A model generated the notes under the pieces. The model saw only the letters and a list, made by a program, of their open reading frames with translations. It had not been told where the DNA came from and did no database searches. From Mobula birostris (taxonomy: Eukaryota): a stretch of DNA of 64,000 nt. The stretch spans positions 176,724,057-176,788,056 of the forward strand of contig NC_092374.1 in the NCBI RefSeq assembly GCF_030028105.1, given 5' to 3'. This document shows, piece after piece, positions 13,306-55,129 of the stretch. Every line of letters begins with the position of its first letter. The stretch's first letter is position 1. Position numbers and translations under genes: made by a program.

Positions 13306-13581
13306 CTTTTCGGGTCAGGTATGTTTTTCCAACTGCATAATAGTCCTTGCATAGTCGCACACAGTCCTTTTCTAACAAGTTCTTGAAATATTTGTTCATT
13401 CTTTCATTTTTATCCCATTTCTTTTTGAAGGGCTGAAATACTGGATCATGTACAATCCACTCCAGTTTGTCTTTATCAAAGCTAAGTATGTATTTTCCAT
13501 CGTAAGCCAACTTCAGTATCCCTATGTTGGGACTATGATCATTCAGCTGACAACCAAACTGCCCTTGTAAGTAGTGATAAC
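13306..13581 (-). CDS. MHC class I heavy chain alpha2-domain exon (non-classical-like)
   Basis: 276-bp open exon, acceptor ttctttcAG|GT TAT CAC and donor AAAAG|GTGAGT, phase 1/1. Encodes GYHYLQGQFGCQL...AYDGKYI...KKKWD...LLEKDCVRLCKDYYAVGKTYLTRK, with the C101/C164 disulfide pair, H93, D119, W147 and Y171 (HLA numbering by manual alignment). Confidence 0.93.
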
Positions 13582-22383: not shown

Positions 22384-22644
22384 CTGTACTTTCGTTATGC
22401 TGCTGCAGCCATTCTATAGCTTGCCCCTTTATGATTCCATGGATACTATGTTCAGTCATTGTATCTTTTGCCCAGTAAGACTTGTCAAATGCAGCCGCCA
22501 TCCATTTTTGTCTTGGGACTGTCATTTCCATAGTTCTGTCATAATACTGGATCTCACAACCATCCAGGGCACCGACGACACTATACTCAGGTAGATCAGC
22601 ATTTCCATGATTCAGAGTGTAGTAATAGATCAGTGAGTGAGACA
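22384..22644 (-). CDS. MHC class I heavy chain alpha1-domain exon (non-classical-like)
   Basis: 261-bp open exon, acceptor ttttgttccctctAG|TG TCT CAC and donor AGTACAG|GTTAGT, phase 1/1. Encodes SHSLIYYYT...VVGALDG...YYD...VPRQKW...SYW...HNESTG, with H3, Y7, D29, R48, Y59, W60 and the N86 sequon. Confidence 0.93.
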
Positions 22645-29230: not shown

Positions 29231-32200
29231 CTGAACACATACTCTGCGGTTTGAAGTATGTGTTGTTTAACTGGTACCCGTCTTTTGAGAACCCCGATGA
29301 TCTGAGCCAGCCCTTGACCTTGATTACGACCATTCATAAGCCCTTCACCCCTGGGGAGAAACAGAGCATTTTGTCTAATTTGCCCTCACGTAAAGTCACA
29401 TGTGGGAATTCAGAATTCTGGCGTAAGCTTGAGGAAATGGTTGAAATTCACCAGATGCACCCTAAAGATGTACACGTGTTGTTAAAAGAGAAGTGCCCAA
29501 GGAATATGTGGGACAGGATGGCCCAAGGGGTGTGGGATGGTACCAGGACAACTATGGGAATGCTAACAATAAAGAAAAATAATGCTTTTCTTAAATATGG
29601 AAGTGAGGCAGTGACTGGGGGGAGGTGAGAGTAACTGGTGAATGATAACGGCAGTGATTCAAAACGCTGATGAGGCGGCTATGGATCATGCAGAACATAA
29701 GTATTGAGCATATGAGGAGTATTCAGAGTTGGATAATCCAAGGAGGGACGACCCAGTCTTCCTGAAAATGCTGAAGGAAGGCCTGAGTTCAGCCCATCAG
29801 GAAGTTTTAGATTTAGTCATAATGGTGGGGTCGACCTACTCTGCAATAGTTTTCTGGGCCAGTGAGATAAACCGAAGAAAGTGCAAGAGAGATCGTAAAG
29901 TGGCTATAGTGGATGCAGCTGCTGTGATGTCCCAGTGGGTTTGTTTTGCTTACCGACAGCCAAGGCACGAAGCAAGAAATTGCTGGAATAGACGTGGGAG
30001 GGTAAAGAAGTTGATATGCTACAGGTGCGGCCTATTGGGACCTGGTTGGAGGCAGTGCACAAAACAGAGGAAAGAAAAACAGGTGAACTTCACAGCAGAC
30101 ACACAATCTCTCACCCCACTCTGACTATCAATCAGATCATAGAGCAAGTAAAGACAACTCCTAGGTCAGAAAAAGATGAGGCGGCGGGCCCCACTACCAG
30201 CGCTGGTGACCCAGGGATATACACAACAGCAACGTTAGGGGGACAGCAATGCAATATTTTAGTGGACACAGGGGCATCGGTATCAATAACAGACTTACCC
30301 TTGCCAACAACCGGACAGGCCATTTATACTAGGGAAGTAAGATGGAAAACAGAGAAGCGAGTCACAAATACTAGAAATCGGGGCAGTGCAGTTTCCAGTG
30401 TATTTCTGAGTATGCCCAAATATCCAGAGCACTATCCTTGGACTAGACATCCTAAGGGAAGCAGGAGCTGTTATAGATTCGGGAAAACGAGAAATAATAT
30501 GGACAGTTCAGAGGCAGCAAACGCATACAACCAACAGAATACACAACCTGGCTAGTGTAGTCGCAGCTGCCCCAATCACCAGAGACTGGAGCCAGGATGG
30601 TGTCTATGGGTTACTTTGTCAGCAGTTCCCAGCAATGTGGGCTAGACTCAAGCAAGATTGTGGTCGAGTAAAGATAAACCCAGTTAAAATAGAGGAGGGT
30701 CTGTATATACCCCAGAAGCGGTGCCCTATAAACACTGATGCACTGACCGCTGTTCAGGGTACAGCAAAGGAACAAAAACACCAGAAAGGTGAGAGCATGA
30801 AACAGAAGGGAAATGAGTGGGCAGATGTTGTTGCGAAGAAGGCAGCAGAGGAACAAGAGGCAATTGAAATTGGAAGCGTGCAGGAAGGAACGAGAGAAGC
30901 CAATTTAGTAAAATTATATGAAGAGCTGGAAGCAGAAGAGAAGGAAAAATGGAGGAGAAAACGGGCAAAGGAGGGACCAGACGAGTGCGGGACACACGGA
31001 GAGGAAGGAGTCGCGGTGGCCCCACTATGTATTAGGCAGATACTATTGAAATTATACCATGGGACGATGCATCAGGGAAGGCAGAGCATGATCACAACCC
31101 TCCAGCAGGACTGGGGGTGGCCAGGGATGGGTGGGGATGTTGAGAAATTCTGCCGCCGTTGTATCATTTGTGCCCAGCATAACCCTGGTAAGGGCAGAAA
31201 GCTACAGCTGGCAAACCAGCCTCGGCTGCGGGGACACTGGGAAAACATCCAGATAGACTTCACAGGGTCTCTGCCAAAGAGCAGGGGGAAAAGCTACTGT
31301 CTTGTAATAATGGATCACTTCAGCTGGTGGATAAAGGCTTTCCCAACAAAGGACTGCTGCATGGATCCTAGCTCAGGAAATCCTCCCAAGGTGAGGAACC
31401 CCAGTCCAGGTGGATTCAGATCAGAGACCACATTTCACGGGGAAAGTCATGAAGGAAATGTGCTGACTGCTAGGGATTTGACAACGGTTCCATGTACCCT
31501 ACCACCCCCAAGAGTTCAGGAATGGTAGAAAGGATGAACCGAACAATCAAGAATGTGTTAGTCAAAGCTATAACTAAGACAGGAAAGACATGGGTTGATG
31601 TATTACTAGGAATCCTGATGCGTGCAACCCCGAACCGCACATTGGGTCTCAGCTCCTACGAATTATTGATGGGGCGAGCAATGCAACTCCCCTATGGGGT
31701 AATTGTGGGTTGCGGGGAGCCTGGGGCTTACAGGGATAGAATGACACAATATGTGAAAGACCTTTGTAACCAACTTAAAAATGTTGAAGGACTGAGTGAA
31801 ACAATAGCAGCGAATCGCTGATCAGGGAGCCAGAGGGAAAGGAGACAGTCCTTCCACAGCCCAGCGACCAAGTCAATGTGAAGGTGCTGCCAGAAAGGCC
31901 GGGGTTTTCCCCCAGGTGGATAGGACCACAGACAGTACACTTAACCAATGATACGTGTGCCTGTGTGCAGACTCGGTGAGGCAGCCAGTGGAAACACTGG
32001 ACTCAGGTTAAAGCATACGACTCACCCTCCTGTTGCTCCTACAGACAGAGCGGGGGATCAAGTGTACCCAATAAACATGTAATTGCAGAAAGCCTAAGAG
32101 AGGAACACCAGCCGGCTATGCCAGACCTGACCACAGCTGAAGAAAACATACCCGGAGGAAACACAAAGGCAGAAAACGCCAAGAGCATGATGGAAAACCA

Positions 32201-38757: not shown

Positions 38758-41054
38758 GGAAAGGTATGTGGTGGGGAGCACTTCGGGTCCAGTGATCACA
38801 ATACCATTAGTTTCAATATAATTATGGAGAAGGATAGGACTGGACCTAGTGTTGAGATTTTTGATTGGAGAAAGGCTAACTTTGAGGAGATGCAAAAGGA
38901 TTTAGGAGGAGTGGATTGGGACAATTTGTTTTATGAGAAGGATGTAATAGAGAAAGGAAGGTCATTTAAATGTGAAATTTTGAGCGTACACGATCTTTAT
39001 GTTCCTGTTAGGTTGAAAGGAAAAGTTAAAAGTTTGAGAGAGCCATGGTTTTCAAGGGATATTGGAAACTTGGTTCGGAAAGAGACAGGGATCTTCAATA
39101 AATATAGGCAGCTTGTAGTTAGAGGTGCTTGAGGAATATAAAAAATGTAAAAAGAATCTTAAGAACGAAAGTAGAAAAGCTAAAAGGAGATAAGAGGCTG
39201 CTTTGGCAAGTAAGGTGAAAATAAATCCAAAGGGTTTCTACAGTTATGTCAATAGCAAAAGGATAGTGAGGGATAAAATTGGTCCCTTGGAGAATCAGAG
39301 TGGACGGTTACATGCGGAGCCAAAAGAGATGGGGGAGATTTTGAACAATTTCTTTTCTTCGGTATTCACTAAGGAGAAGGATATTGAATTGTGTAAAGTA
39401 AAGGAAACAAGGGTTGTTATGGAAAGTATGACGATTAAAGAAGAGGAAGTACTGGCGCGTTTAAGGAATGTAAAAGTGGATAAGTCTCTGGGTCCGGACA
39501 AGATATTCCCTAGGACCTTGAGGGAGGTTAGTGTGGAAATAGCAGGGATCTGACAGAAATATTTCAAATGTCATTAGAAACGAGGATGGTGCCGGATGAT
39601 TGGTGTATTGCTCAAGTGCTTTCATTGTATAAAAAGGGTTCTAAGAGTAAACCTAGCAATTATCAGCCTGAGAGTTTGAAGTCAATGGTGGGTAAATTGA
39701 TGGAAAGTATTCTTAGAGATAGTAAGTATAATTATCTGGATAGACAGGGTCTGATTAGGAACAGTCAACATGGATTTGTGTGTGGAAAATTATGTTTGAC
39801 AAACCTTATTGAATTTTTTGATGAGGTTACTAAGAAAGTTGCCAAGGGTAAAGCAGTGGAGGTTGTCTATATGGACTTCAGTAAGGCCTTTGACAAGGTT
39901 CCACACGGAAGGTTGGTTAGGAAGGTTCAACCATTAGGCATTAATATCGAAGTAGTAAAATGGATTCAACAATGGCTAGATGGGAGATGCCAGAGAGTAG
40001 TGGTGGATAACTGTGTGTCAGATTGGAGGATGGTGTGTAGCGGTGTGCCTCAGGGATCTGTACTGGGTCCAATGTTGTTTGTCATATATATTAATGATCT
40101 GGATGATGGGGTGGTAAATTTGATTAATAAGTATGCAGATGATATTAAGATAGGTGGTGTTGTGGATAATGAAGTAGGTTTTCAAAGCTTGCAGAAAGAT
40201 TTAGGCCAGTTAGAAGAGTGGGCTGAAAGATGGCAGATGGAGTTTAATGCTGAAAAATGTGAGATGCTGTATTTTGGTAGGACTAATCAAAATAGGACAT
40301 ATATGGTAAATGGCAGGACATTGAAGAATGCTGTAGAACAGAGGGATCTAGGTATAATGGTGCATAGTTTCCTGGAGGTGGAATCTCATGTGGATAGGGT
40401 GATGAAGAAAGCTTTTGGTATGCTGGCTTTTATAAATCAGAGCATTGAGTATAGGAGTTGGGATGTAATGTTGGAATTGTATAAGGCATTGATAAGGCCA
40501 AGTCTGGAGTATGGTGTGCAGTTCTGTTCACCGAATTATAGGAAAGATGTCACAAAATTGAGAGAGTACAGAGGAGATTTACTAAAATGCTGCCTGGGGT
40601 TCATCTCGTAAGTTACAGAGAAATGTTGAACAAGTCAGGTCTTTATTCTTTGGAGCATAGAAAGTTGAGGGGGGACTTGATAGAGGTGTTTAAAATTATG
40701 AGGGGGATTGATGGAGTTGACGTGGATAGGCTTTTCCCATTGAGAGTGGGGGAGATTCAAACAAGAGGACATGAGTTGAGAGTTAAAGGGCAAAAGTTTA
40801 GGGGTAACATGAGGAGAAACTTATTTACTCAGAGAGTGGTAGCTGTGTGGAACGAGCTTCCTGCAGAAGTGGTTGAGGCAGGTTCGATGTTGTCATTTAA
40901 AGTTAAATTGGATAGATATATGGACTGGAAAGGAATGGAGGGTTATGGTCTGAGTGCAGGTCGGTGGGGCTAGGTGAGAGTAAGAGTTCGGCATGGACTA
41001 GAAGGGCCGAGATGGCCTGTTTCCATGCTGTAATTGTTATATAGTTATATGGTA
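38758..41054 (+). mobile_element. CR1 LINE, young (347-aa open RT ORF 39568-40611), inserted in the L1 with a probable TAAAT TSD
   Basis: [10 protein letters not shown]...KYADD. (TTATA[A/T]G)-type tail. TAAAT at 38753-38757 and 41055-41059. Confidence 0.92.
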
Positions 41055-42615
41055 TAAATAAAATGGATTTTCTGGCTACTTAAAGAAACAAATGCAATCA
41101 AACAACAAGCTGAAGGGGATAAATGACTACAGTCTGTTATTGTTAATCCAAAAATTGCAATAATAGGATGAGGTTGTAAATCAATATGCAAAACTACTGA
41201 CATAATATCAAAAATTTCCTTTCAATATTTTTCTAAAAGAGGGCAGGACTGGAACATGTGTCAAGGAAGCTACCTCAGAACTTCATCTGTCACAGACAGG
41301 ATTTATATGACCATAAAAATGAGATAACTTATCCTTAGGCATATGAGCACTATGAACCACCTTAAATTGTATCAAAGTGTGTCTGGAACACATTGAAGAA
41401 GTGTTGACTAGTTGGAGAATTTTCTCTGATTTTTCTGTGTGTAAAGGTACCTGAAGTTCTCTTTCCCATTCTTTCTTAAGTTTAGCAGACATAGCTAAAT
41501 ATATTTTTGTAATTGAATCATAAACAATTGCTATTAAACTCTTCTGATAGGCATTTAAACCTAAAAAGTTTTCTGTAATTTCAGTTTGATGTGATATAGG
41601 AACAGTAGGTAAAATAATCTTCAAAAAGTTTCTAATCTGCAAATAACTGAAAAAATGTGATAAATGCAAATTAAATTTATTAGACAACTGTTCAAAGGAC
41701 ACGAGACAATTATCCATGAATAAATCGTGAAAACATATTATTCCTTTTGTTTTCCGTAAAAGAAAAGCTTGTTCAGTTCTGGATGGTTGGAAGAAAAAAT
41801 TGGATATAATTGGGCTTGATGAAATAAATTTATTCAATCCAAAAAATTTATGAAATTGAAACCATATTCATATTATATGTTTAATTATTGGATTGTTTGT
41901 TTATTCAATTTAGTAAACGCAAAGGGAAGCGAAGCCCCTGAAATAGAAGCCTATGAGAACCCCTGCAGGGGCTCACGCTCAAGGTTCACCCATCGTGGAC
42001 ATTGAATTTCATCCAGATCTTGTGTCCAGAACATTAGATATCAAATATTAATTGCCCAATAATAGAATCCAAAGTTTGGCAATATTCTGTAAATATTTCT
42101 TACTTAATCTAGGGTTTTCATTCTGCCATATATATGAAGAAATGTTAGAATCAATAATATCAAAAAAGGATTTAGAGATGAAGATTGGTACCACCTGAAA
42201 TAGATACAGAAATTTAGGTAAAATAATCATCTTAATTGCAATTATTCAACCAATCAATGATAGGGACAATGGGGACCATTTAGTAAGCAGTTGTTTAACA
42301 TGATCAATTAAGGGTAAAAAGTTAACTTTAAATCGATCCTTATGCTTCTTAGTAATTTTAACACCCAAATAAGTAAAATATTGGTAACCAGTCTAAATGG
42401 TAATTGTCTATAGATTGGAACTTGCATATTTAATGGAAAAAGTTCACTCTTATTAAGATTCAATTTATAACCAGAAAAACTACTAAACTGAGCGAGTAGT
42501 AATATTACAGCAGGAATGGATTTCTCTGGATTAGAGATACATAGTAACAGGTCATCTGCAAATAATGATACCTTATGCGTCTCAATCCCATGAATAATGC
42601 CAAATATATCGGGTG

Positions 42616-43456
42616 TGTTACGTACCCCATAACTGGGTTGCCAAACCAGCAGAAATGGATCATTCAGTTGGAGTCTGGATTACTAGTACTAAGAAAGTTT
42701 TATTAAAGAAACAAGCAACACAGTACTCTAATCAAAAGGATAATAAATGCAGCAGTTCAGCAATGATAAACACACATGTGCACAGAATTAAGTTAACAGG
42801 ATCAATCAAGCTCTATCGTTGTCTAGGGATAAATGACCAGTTTCAAAGTGATGCAAAGTTCAGTTCAGTTCAGTTCACAGTAATCGTTGCCGTGGCGATG
42901 GACAGTGGGGGGAAGGCTTCCACACACAGACCTTCACAGTCAGCTGTTGGACGAGTCCTTTGTGATGTCATCTGAGGTCACCGACCGTGACCCCTCCGTT
43001 TCCAGATACGATCGTTTCCCTGCGGTGAACCTGGCACCCAGGCAAGGGTGGACACACACCAGGTTCCCGCCGATCGTGCCTTTCCACCCTGTGCGTTTAT
43101 GGCCCAGTACTTCCCATCGACTTGTGAGAGACGCACCGCTTCCAGGGTCTTGTTACCTCGGGTGTCGTGTGTGTCCTGCCTTAGCGAACCTGTCCCTTTT
43201 TATCCCCCTGCTGGGGTATCGCCTGTCCATCACTTCAAACAGTTCAGGGTTCAAAGGGGGAGCCGCTCTTGACAGCTCTCTCTCCCGTCCCTTCATTACA
43301 CATCTCCAAATGCCGCTCCATTGTTTTCCTTATCTCTCTCTCTCTCTCCCTCCCTCCCTCCCTCCCTCCCCCGAAGTCAGGTGGCAGACCAACTGCTGAT
43401 TCCACTGGTGCCAGCACAGGACAGCTACATCTTAATCTATGTGTATTCTTGTCACA
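42616..43456 (-). mobile_element. Solo LTR (family A, copy 2) with 4-bp TSD GGTG
   Basis: Reverse-complement homologue of 464-1364, with termini TGTTAC...GTCACA on the + strand. GGTG at 42612-42615 and 43457-43460. Confidence 0.92.
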
Positions 43457-52530: not shown

Positions 52531-53017
52531 TATCCCTCTCTAACACCTGACATCTTCATTGTAATGACACCACTATTTTAGTGTCATCTGCAAACTAAGT
52601 AAACACTAAGTAAATGGGGGGAAATGGAAAATAGTTGTAAGTTAGAAATTTCACTTCTCATTGTGATAACATTTTCCCAACAAATACCGTTCTGTAAGTG
52701 ATGAAGATGAAAGGCACGGTTCTCCAAATCTTCCACGTCGTATCCTAAATTACATAAATAGAAATTAATATCTTGCACAGTTTTTGTTTCAGTCTTAGGC
52801 ACTAGTAAAATGATGCCTAATGAAACCCGAAATGTTGTAAAAACAAAACAGAAGCTCCATTCTGGTGATAGACCAGTCTTAAGTAAGAGATTAAACACTA
52901 CACTTGCACAAACCCAGCCGCACTTTGCAGAGCGCAAGCAGTTTTAACTACGAGCCCACTTCTGTTCAGTGGTGGGACATCATTCAGTAATAAATAAAAC
53001 TAGAAAAGTGTACTTAC

Positions 53018-53069
53018 TGGATAGAACCACTTGTAAGTGGAAGAAACACAAGAGCACGCACAGGAACAT
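53018..53069 (-). CDS. Signal-peptide (leader) exon, probable exon 1 of the MHC class I gene
   Basis: ATG at 53069 encodes MFLCVLLCFFHLQVVLS plus 1 nt, then donor GTAAGT. Phase 1 matches the alpha1 acceptor. Lies in unique, CpG-containing DNA ~90 bp downstream of an X/Y module. Too short for the ORF track. Confidence 0.75.
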
Positions 53070-53155
53070 CCTGAACTATGCACACCGACTCACCAAGACA
53101 GGAGCGGAACCGAGTCGCATTTTACCCTCAAAGAATCGGTGCGGAAGCTTCTGAC

Positions 53156-53200
53156 CCAATCAGAATGTAACTATATAGGAGTTCGTCATCAACTTCTAGG
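53156..53200 (-). promoter_or_regulatory. MHC-type X1/X2-Y promoter module
   Basis: Minus strand reads CCTAGAAGTTGATG (X1-like; compare HLA-DRA CCTAGCAACAGATG), overlapping TGACG (X2/CRE half-site), then a 23-nt spacer and CTGATTGG (Y box, inverted CCAAT). A GC box abuts it upstream. Confidence 0.7.
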
Positions 53201-55129
53201 CGGGGTGATTAGAACCCAACCTGCCTCAGATCTAAATTGCTATCTATAACGACATGCCCAGCAGTGTCGTGAGACCAAGGGCTGAAAAATGTTCACGGTA
53301 ACGCTCTTTATTTGTAACTCTATTCGATTGGTATTGAAATCAGATCTGGTCATTGACACTGGGCAGAGCATGGGCTGGACACTGATGCCTGGCCAATTAG
53401 AGAGGAATCTAGTTATTCGCAAATAGTTATTGTGTCCACTTTTAATATAATACGTGACCTTTTTTTGTTGAGAACTGGGGGATATTGTATTCAGATCGAG
53501 GTCTTTCATCTGGGCAGATTCCCTCGAACTTTTAAGTACTTATTTGGCCAATTGTGGAAACGAATAATTGATGAACTGGTGGCGTGTCTACAGATCTATC
53601 ATCTTTCCGAGAGAAAAAAAAAACAACTATCTCGCTGCACACCCTTAGGAGAAGCTAATCTTGTCAGAGGTCCAATTTTGACAACGGATTTGGTTCTAAT
53701 TGTTCCCCAACAATTCAACATAGGTGAAGGCATTGGACTCAATGTTGCCTATTCCAACAGTTAAGGAGTAGATGCGAGTTTAATCCCATGCCACATAGGA
53801 AGACAAATTGTCTGCGAATAACACAAGTATGGGACAAAGAAGGAGGACAAAGACATGGATGGAGAAGTGAACTGACAGGGAACTAGAAACTCAGAGCTAC
53901 TCCATAGTCCACAAGATTGCATCCTCAGCACTCCACTCTGCTTCCTGGACATATATACAGTAACTCTGTGGCTAGACTCTGATCTAATTCCATCTACATG
54001 ATACCACCATAGTGGGCTGTCTCTCATATAATGGTTAAAAGAGGGGGATAGGGAGCTTAGCGACATGGTATCATGGCACCAACATTTTTCTCAGAATCAA
54101 CAAAACAAAGGACTTAGTCATTGATTTCAGGAAGTGGATGTTGCACATAGTCCTGGCTACATCAACAGTGTTAAGAGTGAGAGGGTTGAGAGCTACAAGT
54201 TTCTGGTAGTAAACATCGCTAATAGCCTGTCCGGATCTAAACCCACTGATGTCAGAGCAGAGATAGCTCACAATCACCTCTACTTCTTCAGGAAGCTAGG
54301 GAACAGTGGTGTGTTCCCATAACTCTTTATTAATTTTTATCAATGTACCATAGGAAGCATTCTAACTAGATGCATGATAGTTTGGTATATGAAATGGTCT
54401 GCATCTGACCACAAAAAAACCTGTACAGAGGTATGCACACACCGCTACACAGACAACATCAAAGTCAGGATCAAACTTGGGTCACTGGAACTGTATAAAA
54501 GCAACAGAAAAAGAACAAAAGAACAGTGAAAATTATCAAAGGTATATAAAGAGAGGGAGAGACAGATAAATATAGACTGAAAGCTAGAAATTTATAGCTT
54601 TTTATAGTTTCTTTTATTATGTACCATTCACTGTTGCCACTAAACAACATATTTCATGACATATGCCATTGATATTAAAACTGATTCTGATTCAGGGATC
54701 GCAGTACTTCTCCGCTTACTTACCCGGCTGATCAGTATCAGTTGTACCACATCCTGTCTCCAAATACTGGGTGTTAAAATCATTCCACACAATATCATGG
54801 GCCAAAGGGCCTATCTTGTGCAGTGCTCAATGTTCTATATTTGAAACATTGTGCTTAACCTCCTTGTCAGAAGTGAATAAAAGTGAGCTTCCAGGAATTC
54901 TGAAACTCATCAGAAAATATATTGATAGCACTCAGATTTTAGTATGCTGTTATTAGGCTTTAAATGGATATTGTTAATATGTTGTGAATTGCTTTAGTAT
55001 TATGGAGCAAACTGCAAAACATCAAAGGATTGTTATGTGGTTAAATCACTGGGTGACTGTATCAAATGGCACTGTCTTTGTTTCTTTGTTGAAGTGGGCA
55101 ATGTGAAAGTTTGATTCCCAAACAAAGTC

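Follow-up and report, generated by a model that had tools for sequence, protein, structure and literature searches.

A constrained X2-like and Y-box pair upstream of the leader exon of a non-classical MHC class I gene in Mobula birostris

Introduction

In the SXY module of mammalian MHC promoters, as in HLA-DRA and H2-K, the boxes immediately precede a short 5' UTR in the order X1–X2–Y, with an S box some 16 nt 5' of X, X1 abutting X2, X2 taking the form of a CRE-like heptamer and Y that of an inverted CCAAT (CTGATTGG) on the coding strand. The gap between X2 and Y in HLA-DRA is 15 nt. Published work has reported the spacing of the boxes as critical, its ranges being given for other box boundaries than those used here. 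The module has been published as conserved across vertebrates; in teleosts, many class I promoters are reported to carry W/S, X2 and Y/enhancer B motifs (PMC7573153), and the targets of mouse NLRC5 include non-classical class I genes. Our search of the literature found no published description of an SXY-type promoter module in sharks or rays.

The gene considered here has described counterparts in a RefSeq model from Mobula birostris itself and in a shark MHC class I-like protein of solved structure (PDB 9CH4). We analysed a window of 64,000 nt from M. birostris, the whole stretch of DNA under study, in which a preliminary description had placed a leader exon some 30 kb upstream of the alpha1 exon and, ahead of it, an SXY-like promoter. 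The exon is correct but it is not new, being already known from the public RefSeq annotation; the new part is the promoter element.

Results

The leader exon and its gene model

The coding part of the leader exon occupies 52 nt of the minus strand (53018-53069), from an ATG at 53069-53067 to a phase-1 end at 53018. It comprises the 17 codons of a signal peptide, MFLCVLLCFFHLQVVLS, and the base that opens the junction codon, and it is carried by RefSeq isoforms X1-X3. The splice donor GTAAGT that follows (53012-53017, minus strand) is invariant in 4/4 genes, namely the manta gene and the three sawfish genes described below; the coordinates, phase and donor of the preliminary description were reproduced. 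The alpha1 acceptor lies at 22646-22645, and when 53018 is spliced to 22644 the reading frame continues as ...VLS-M-SHSLIYYY. The alpha1 exon (22384-22644, minus strand, 261 nt, phase 1/1) matches Pfam MHC_I with an E value of 1.9e-07 and the RefSeq proteins P0165 and P0167 at 100%, and the alpha2 exon (13306-13581, minus strand, 276 nt) matches the same Pfam family with an E value of 2.5e-13. Two of the features that mark an MHC class I gene were found here, namely a short exon that encodes a hydrophobic signal peptide and ends in phase 1 at a GT donor, and alpha1 and alpha2 exons of phase 1/1 with Pfam MHC_I matches.

Among the mini-ORFs of the window that end in phase 1 at a strong donor and encode a hydrophobic peptide, the leader was the best. 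A homology scan, in which the leader peptides of eight relatives were compared by BLOSUM scoring with all six frames of the window, gave a score of 42.9 at 53069 and only 18.4 for the runner-up 17-mer, and there is therefore no second leader in the window. No further MHC exon was found within the 30-kb interval between leader and alpha1. A nearer alternative first exon was considered and rejected, as the interval from 22644 to 47077 contains no hydrophobic mini-ORF that ends in phase 1 at a strong donor. An upstream ATG lies at -51 and opens an ORF of 14 codons (53076-53120, minus strand), whose TAG stop falls just before the main ATG; this ORF is absent from the sawfish genes and is relevant only if transcription begins 5' of its ATG.

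An exhaustive phmmer search with alpha1 as the query returned close relatives whose leaders resemble the manta peptide, and a word-indexed search returned M. birostris RefSeq proteins named 'major histocompatibility complex class I-related gene protein-like', the isoforms X1-X3 of the gene (XP_072113429.1/431.1, XP_072113432.1 and XP_072113433.1). Isoform X3 (P0167, XP_072113433.1, 334 aa) starts MFLCVLLCFFHLQVVLS-M-SHSLIYYY, exactly the join across an intron of about 30.4 kb that had been predicted with the leader as exon 1. P0167, P0165 and P0155 were placed on the window by tblastn at 100% identity (53069-53019, 52742-52689, 22645-22382 and 13594-13307). The exon had been called hidden, which is true of the ORF track, from which it is missing, but not of RefSeq, where it was already annotated. 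The same start, leader-M-SHSLIYYY, is common to orthologues in Mobula hypostoma, Hypanus sabinus and Hemitrygon akajei; in all, the leader is used by three RefSeq isoforms and four orthologues, and homologous leaders of 17 residues occur in skates, sawfish and sharks, in at least 12 relatives. The join of leader to alpha1 is present in the RefSeq XP models and in the four orthologues, all of which are computed models; when transcript-derived proteins carrying this join were sought, all matches came from genome annotation and none from transcript assemblies.

The solved shark homologue, chain 9ch4_A, aligned over alpha1-alpha3 with an E value of 8.8e-113, its residue 2 falling on residue 19 of the query. 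The mature chain therefore begins at the junction residue, in agreement with the expected cleavage after VLS.

According to the RefSeq models, isoforms X1 and X2 also contain a cassette exon of 57 nt (52688-52744, minus strand), with acceptor TTTAG and donor GTATTT, which adds RYDVEDLENRAFHLHHLQN; the junction codon becomes V and 19 residues come to stand between the signal peptide and alpha1. This region is alignable in the closest sawfish gene, where an indel of 2 nt shifts the frame and the donor has lost its GT. Given this loss, the cassette exon looks either specific to the manta lineage or an artefact of annotation.

Intron 1 and the length of the gene

By the RefSeq join, intron 1 of isoform X3 measures 30,373 nt (22645-53017, minus strand) and contains retroelement fragments, among them an LTR-retroelement integrase ORF (Integrase_H2C2, 30410-31525, plus strand) and two ORFs for LINE-type reverse transcriptases (RVT_1; 39532-40608, plus strand, and 42311-42679, minus strand). 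A proline/serine-rich repeat family is likewise present in the intron in several copies, and it is seen in the window at 19.3-20.1, 25.4-27.2, 36-37, 51.7-52.5 and 56-59 kb. The annotated CDS of the manta gene spans 70,039 bp, and the alpha3, transmembrane and cytoplasmic exons therefore lie outside the window, past its low end; from the same span, the stop codon falls about 17 kb beyond that end, and hence intron 3 is longer than 13 kb. Genes of this length are usual in the lineage, the CDS span being about 69 kb for Hypanus and for Hemitrygon and 40 kb for Scyliorhinus torazame, and the first introns of the three sawfish genes are 15.9, 5.1 and 8.7 kb long. Very long first introns filled with retroelements (5-30 kb) are normal in this lineage, which matters when genes are annotated from ORFs alone.

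About 400 nt at the start of intron 1 can be aligned between the manta gene and the closest sawfish gene, L001 (52890-52975, minus strand; L001:3110-3200). They include the near-identical blocks CCACCACTGAACAG, GCTCTGCAAAGTGCGG and GTTTAATCTC, which the two older sawfish paralogues lack. These shared blocks could be a case of neutral retention, four-fold sites in this pair being 80% identical, or could be an intronic regulatory element.

Layout of the upstream region

The region from -261 to +60 of the manta gene was aligned with that of three genes of the sawfish Pristis pectinata (alignment A1, 346 columns): L001 (P0153), which is the closest, with 69% protein identity, L002 (P0158) and L003 (P0161). 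In the manta, CCTAGAAGTTGATGACG lies 5' of the leader at 53200-53184 and CTGATTGG at 53163-53156, both on the minus strand, with 86 nt from the Y box to the ATG. The spacer between the two had been given as 23 nt and is in fact 20 nt (53183-53164).

Five elements can be distinguished on the minus strand of this region. The first is a candidate block at the S position, CTGAGGCAGGTTGGG (53215-53229), which lies ~15-28 nt ahead of the X1-like element and is partly conserved, with invariant columns G-GC-GGT in the manta and three sawfish genes of A1. The X1-like element itself, CCTAGAAGTTGA (53189-53200), is directly followed by an X2-like CRE half-site, the heptamer TGACGAA (53188-53182), which begins at -119 from the ATG and stands 5' of Y. 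The Y box, CTGATTGG, is an inverted CCAAT on the coding strand, with its ATTGG at -91, and it gives way to a conserved block (53121-53155) that is a candidate for the core promoter or start-site region.

A CpG-enriched zone (53000-53700) covers the promoter and exon 1, with a CpG o/e of 0.68-0.82 vs 0.27 for the whole window, as expected of an unmethylated promoter. The promoter is TATA-less, and no conserved ISRE, NF-kB, GAS, TATA, Sp1 or E-box site was found within 800 nt when manta and sawfish were compared. The composite CCTAG-N7-TGACG-N15-30-ATTGG occurs once in the 64 kb and in 0/100 shuffles, this pattern having been defined after it was seen.

Conservation in the sawfish paralogues

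Across the four genes of A1, the Y box is invariant in 8/8 columns and X2 (TGA[C/T]GAA) in 6/7, compared with 25% in flanking non-coding DNA and ~50-67% at four-fold sites. The block after Y retains 17/35 invariant columns (22-25% in flanking non-coding DNA), the coding leader 27/52, the DNA upstream of X1 33/130 and the rest of the 5' region 11/51. The X1 element, with 3/12 invariant columns, is at background. The longest invariant run in the whole alignment is TCTGATTGG, which exceeds the splice donor. In a sliding profile over 2.1 kb, conservation climbs from a background of ~0.25 to 0.66-0.70 at -120 to -60, the level of the coding leader. Searched on both strands (159.6 kb in all), each of the four loci gave a single match to the pattern TGAYGAA-N12-22-CTGATTGG, and all four matches lie on the coding strand and start at -119 from the ATG.

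The pair formed by the manta gene and L001 was set aside as a footprint on its own, since its four-fold degenerate sites are 80% identical and its introns align over ~400 nt at about the same level; the pair is therefore near neutral, and the weight of the footprint rests on the two older paralogues, L002 and L003. The introns of these two can no longer be aligned with those of the manta, yet X2 and Y are fixed. The alignment with paralogous promoters, which had been proposed as a check, bears out the X2-like and Y motifs, whose distance from the ATG is constant; the columns of X1 stay at background.

All three sawfish promoters contain a second ATTGG, within a shared block GAGGATTGGAG ~43 nt 5' of X1 (L001:2827, L002:2829 and L003:2822, about -172 to -179 from the ATG), whose manta counterpart, GAGGCAGGTTGGG, is degenerate. 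An S-like motif that includes a Y sequence has been reported for mouse H2-T promoters, at 45 bp 5' of X.

The X1 element and the spacing of the boxes

Compared in register with a human class II X1 string, as found in a class II X-box paper, the manta element agrees at 10/14 positions and those of L001 and L003 at 9/14 each, while L002, at 5/14, is at background. Matches of this quality occur in these loci at a frequency per position of 4e-4 for at least 10/14 and 2.3e-3 for at least 9/14. The manta and sawfish elements agree with the human string at largely different positions, which suggests that X1 has drifted from a better ancestral X1.

Where the RFX half-site (RGYAAC) would lie, the manta sequence is AGAAGT, which agrees at 3/6 positions; in two sawfish genes it is GACAAC, with 5/6, and the third has nothing recognisable. 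The CCTAG of the manta is not common to the sawfish genes, which read GCTTGACAAC(T/C)GG or GCTTGCTATTCAG. The element had been described as a near-mammalian X box, which overstates the resemblance, given the CCTAG that the sawfish do not share, the half-site of 3/6 and the invariance of 3/12 columns. The abutting register of X1 and X2 is kept in these genes, and the gap between X2 and Y is 18 nt in the manta and 16 nt in the sawfish.

Discussion

We consider it probable that 53018-53069 is exon 1 of the annotated non-classical class I gene and that the ~200 nt upstream of it form the proximal promoter, with an X2–Y core. The proposal that the region upstream of the leader is the promoter of the gene is partly supported: the X2-like and Y motifs, which keep their distance from the ATG in sawfish, and the raised CpG o/e speak for it, but its X1 part is not conserved above background. 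The gene is a non-classical MHC class I gene of M. birostris and a close relative of the shark protein of PDB 9CH4. Its exon 1, encoding the signal peptide of 17 residues, would be spliced in phase 1 directly to alpha1, 30.4 kb downstream, in isoform X3, or alternatively to the 57-nt cassette exon and from there to alpha1 in isoforms X1 and X2. The constrained core of the promoter consists of the CRE-like TGACGAA (-119) and the inverted CCAAT CTGATTGG (ATTGG at -91), and it would correspond to the X2–Y pair of an SXY-type MHC promoter. To judge from the identity of the motifs and their constraint, the Y box most likely binds NF-Y, and X2 a factor of the CREB/ATF type. The X1-like sequence that abuts X2 in the canonical register is a degenerate and fast-evolving part of the promoter, at which RFX may bind and NLRC5 or CIITA may be recruited, though we think this less likely than not.

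A serious rival, to which we give somewhat less than an even chance, is a generic proximal promoter of CRE and CCAAT boxes with no link to the MHC enhanceosome, in which the resemblance to X1 would be coincidental. Boxes of both kinds occur widely in the promoters of vertebrates. Such a promoter would account for a constraint that falls on X2 and Y only, in a TATA-less and CpG-enriched region with neither interferon nor NF-kB elements. It does not readily account for the in-register similarity to X1 in 3/4 genes, which is unlikely to arise by chance at the frequencies given above (4e-4 for at least 10 matches and 2.3e-3 for at least 9), nor for a Y box of the extended MHC type, CTGATTGG, oriented as in MHC promoters and preceded by X2 at 16-18 nt, all of it in front of an MHC gene.

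The full canonical SXY enhanceosome, in which RFX at X1, CREB/ATF at X2 and NF-Y at Y recruit an orthologue of NLRC5 or CIITA, is possible but we judge it rather improbable. The order and orientation of the boxes and the abutting X1–X2 register are those of MHC promoters, X1 matches the human string at 10/14 positions in the manta and at 9/14 in two sawfish paralogues, and a partly conserved block occupies the S position. The module has moreover been described as conserved across vertebrates, W/S, X2 and Y have been reported for many class I promoters of teleosts, and non-classical class I genes are among the mouse NLRC5 targets. However, the core half-site for RFX is only 3/6 in the manta (AGAAGT) and absent in one sawfish paralogue, the X1 columns are invariant in just 3/12, no ISRE or enhancer A is present, and the X2–Y gap is 2 nt longer in the manta than in the sawfish, although spacing is reported to be critical.

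That the motifs are a chance occurrence, or that the leader belongs to another gene or a dead duplicate, is very improbable and already contradicted, for although the motif pattern was defined after being seen, it appeared in 0/100 shuffles and the motifs stand at -119 in four genes, the leader is used by three RefSeq isoforms and four orthologues, and the 30-kb interval holds no other MHC exon or leader homologue.

Returning to the proximal promoter with an X2–Y core, what is now defined is a precisely placed X2–Y pair with an X1-like neighbour, under constraint in a cartilaginous-fish lineage of non-classical class I genes. By a rough estimate, rays and sawfish last shared an ancestor more than 150 million years ago. 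It is conceivable, though we think it less likely than not, that in this ancestor the non-classical class I genes (the relatives of 9CH4) were connected to the X1–X2–Y platform, X2 and Y having since been frozen at -119 and -91 and X1 having drifted differently in each lineage. If it is true that a ray NLRC5 or CIITA drives the promoter, joint control of classical and non-classical presentation through NLR transactivators would go back to the base of the jawed vertebrates. The locus raises the question whether NLRC5/CIITA and RFX of sharks and rays act on non-classical class I genes, and the element of ~50 nt offers comparative immunologists a concrete target for mutation.

Among the known systems, the RefSeq model of M. 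birostris describes the same gene, all four exons in the window matching at 100%; it adds the 57-nt cassette exon in X1/X2 and is silent on promoter motifs. The shark protein of PDB 9CH4 is a close homologue whose mature chain starts at the residue encoded by the junction of exon 1 and alpha1, but it comes from another species and concerns the protein only. With the mammalian SXY module the manta promoter shares the order X1–X2–Y with X1 abutting X2, the CRE-like heptamer of X2, the form and strand of the inverted CCAAT and the position immediately ahead of what would be a short 5' UTR; it differs in the RFX half-site of X1, which is degenerate and not conserved, and in the X2–Y gap of 18 nt (16 nt in sawfish). 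Classical class I promoters differ from it further, in that the manta has no conserved ISRE, NF-kB or GAS site. The teleost class I promoters (PMC7573153) are likewise non-mammalian, and in them too X2 and Y are the recognisable parts, whereas the manta promoter belongs to a cartilaginous-fish and non-classical lineage.
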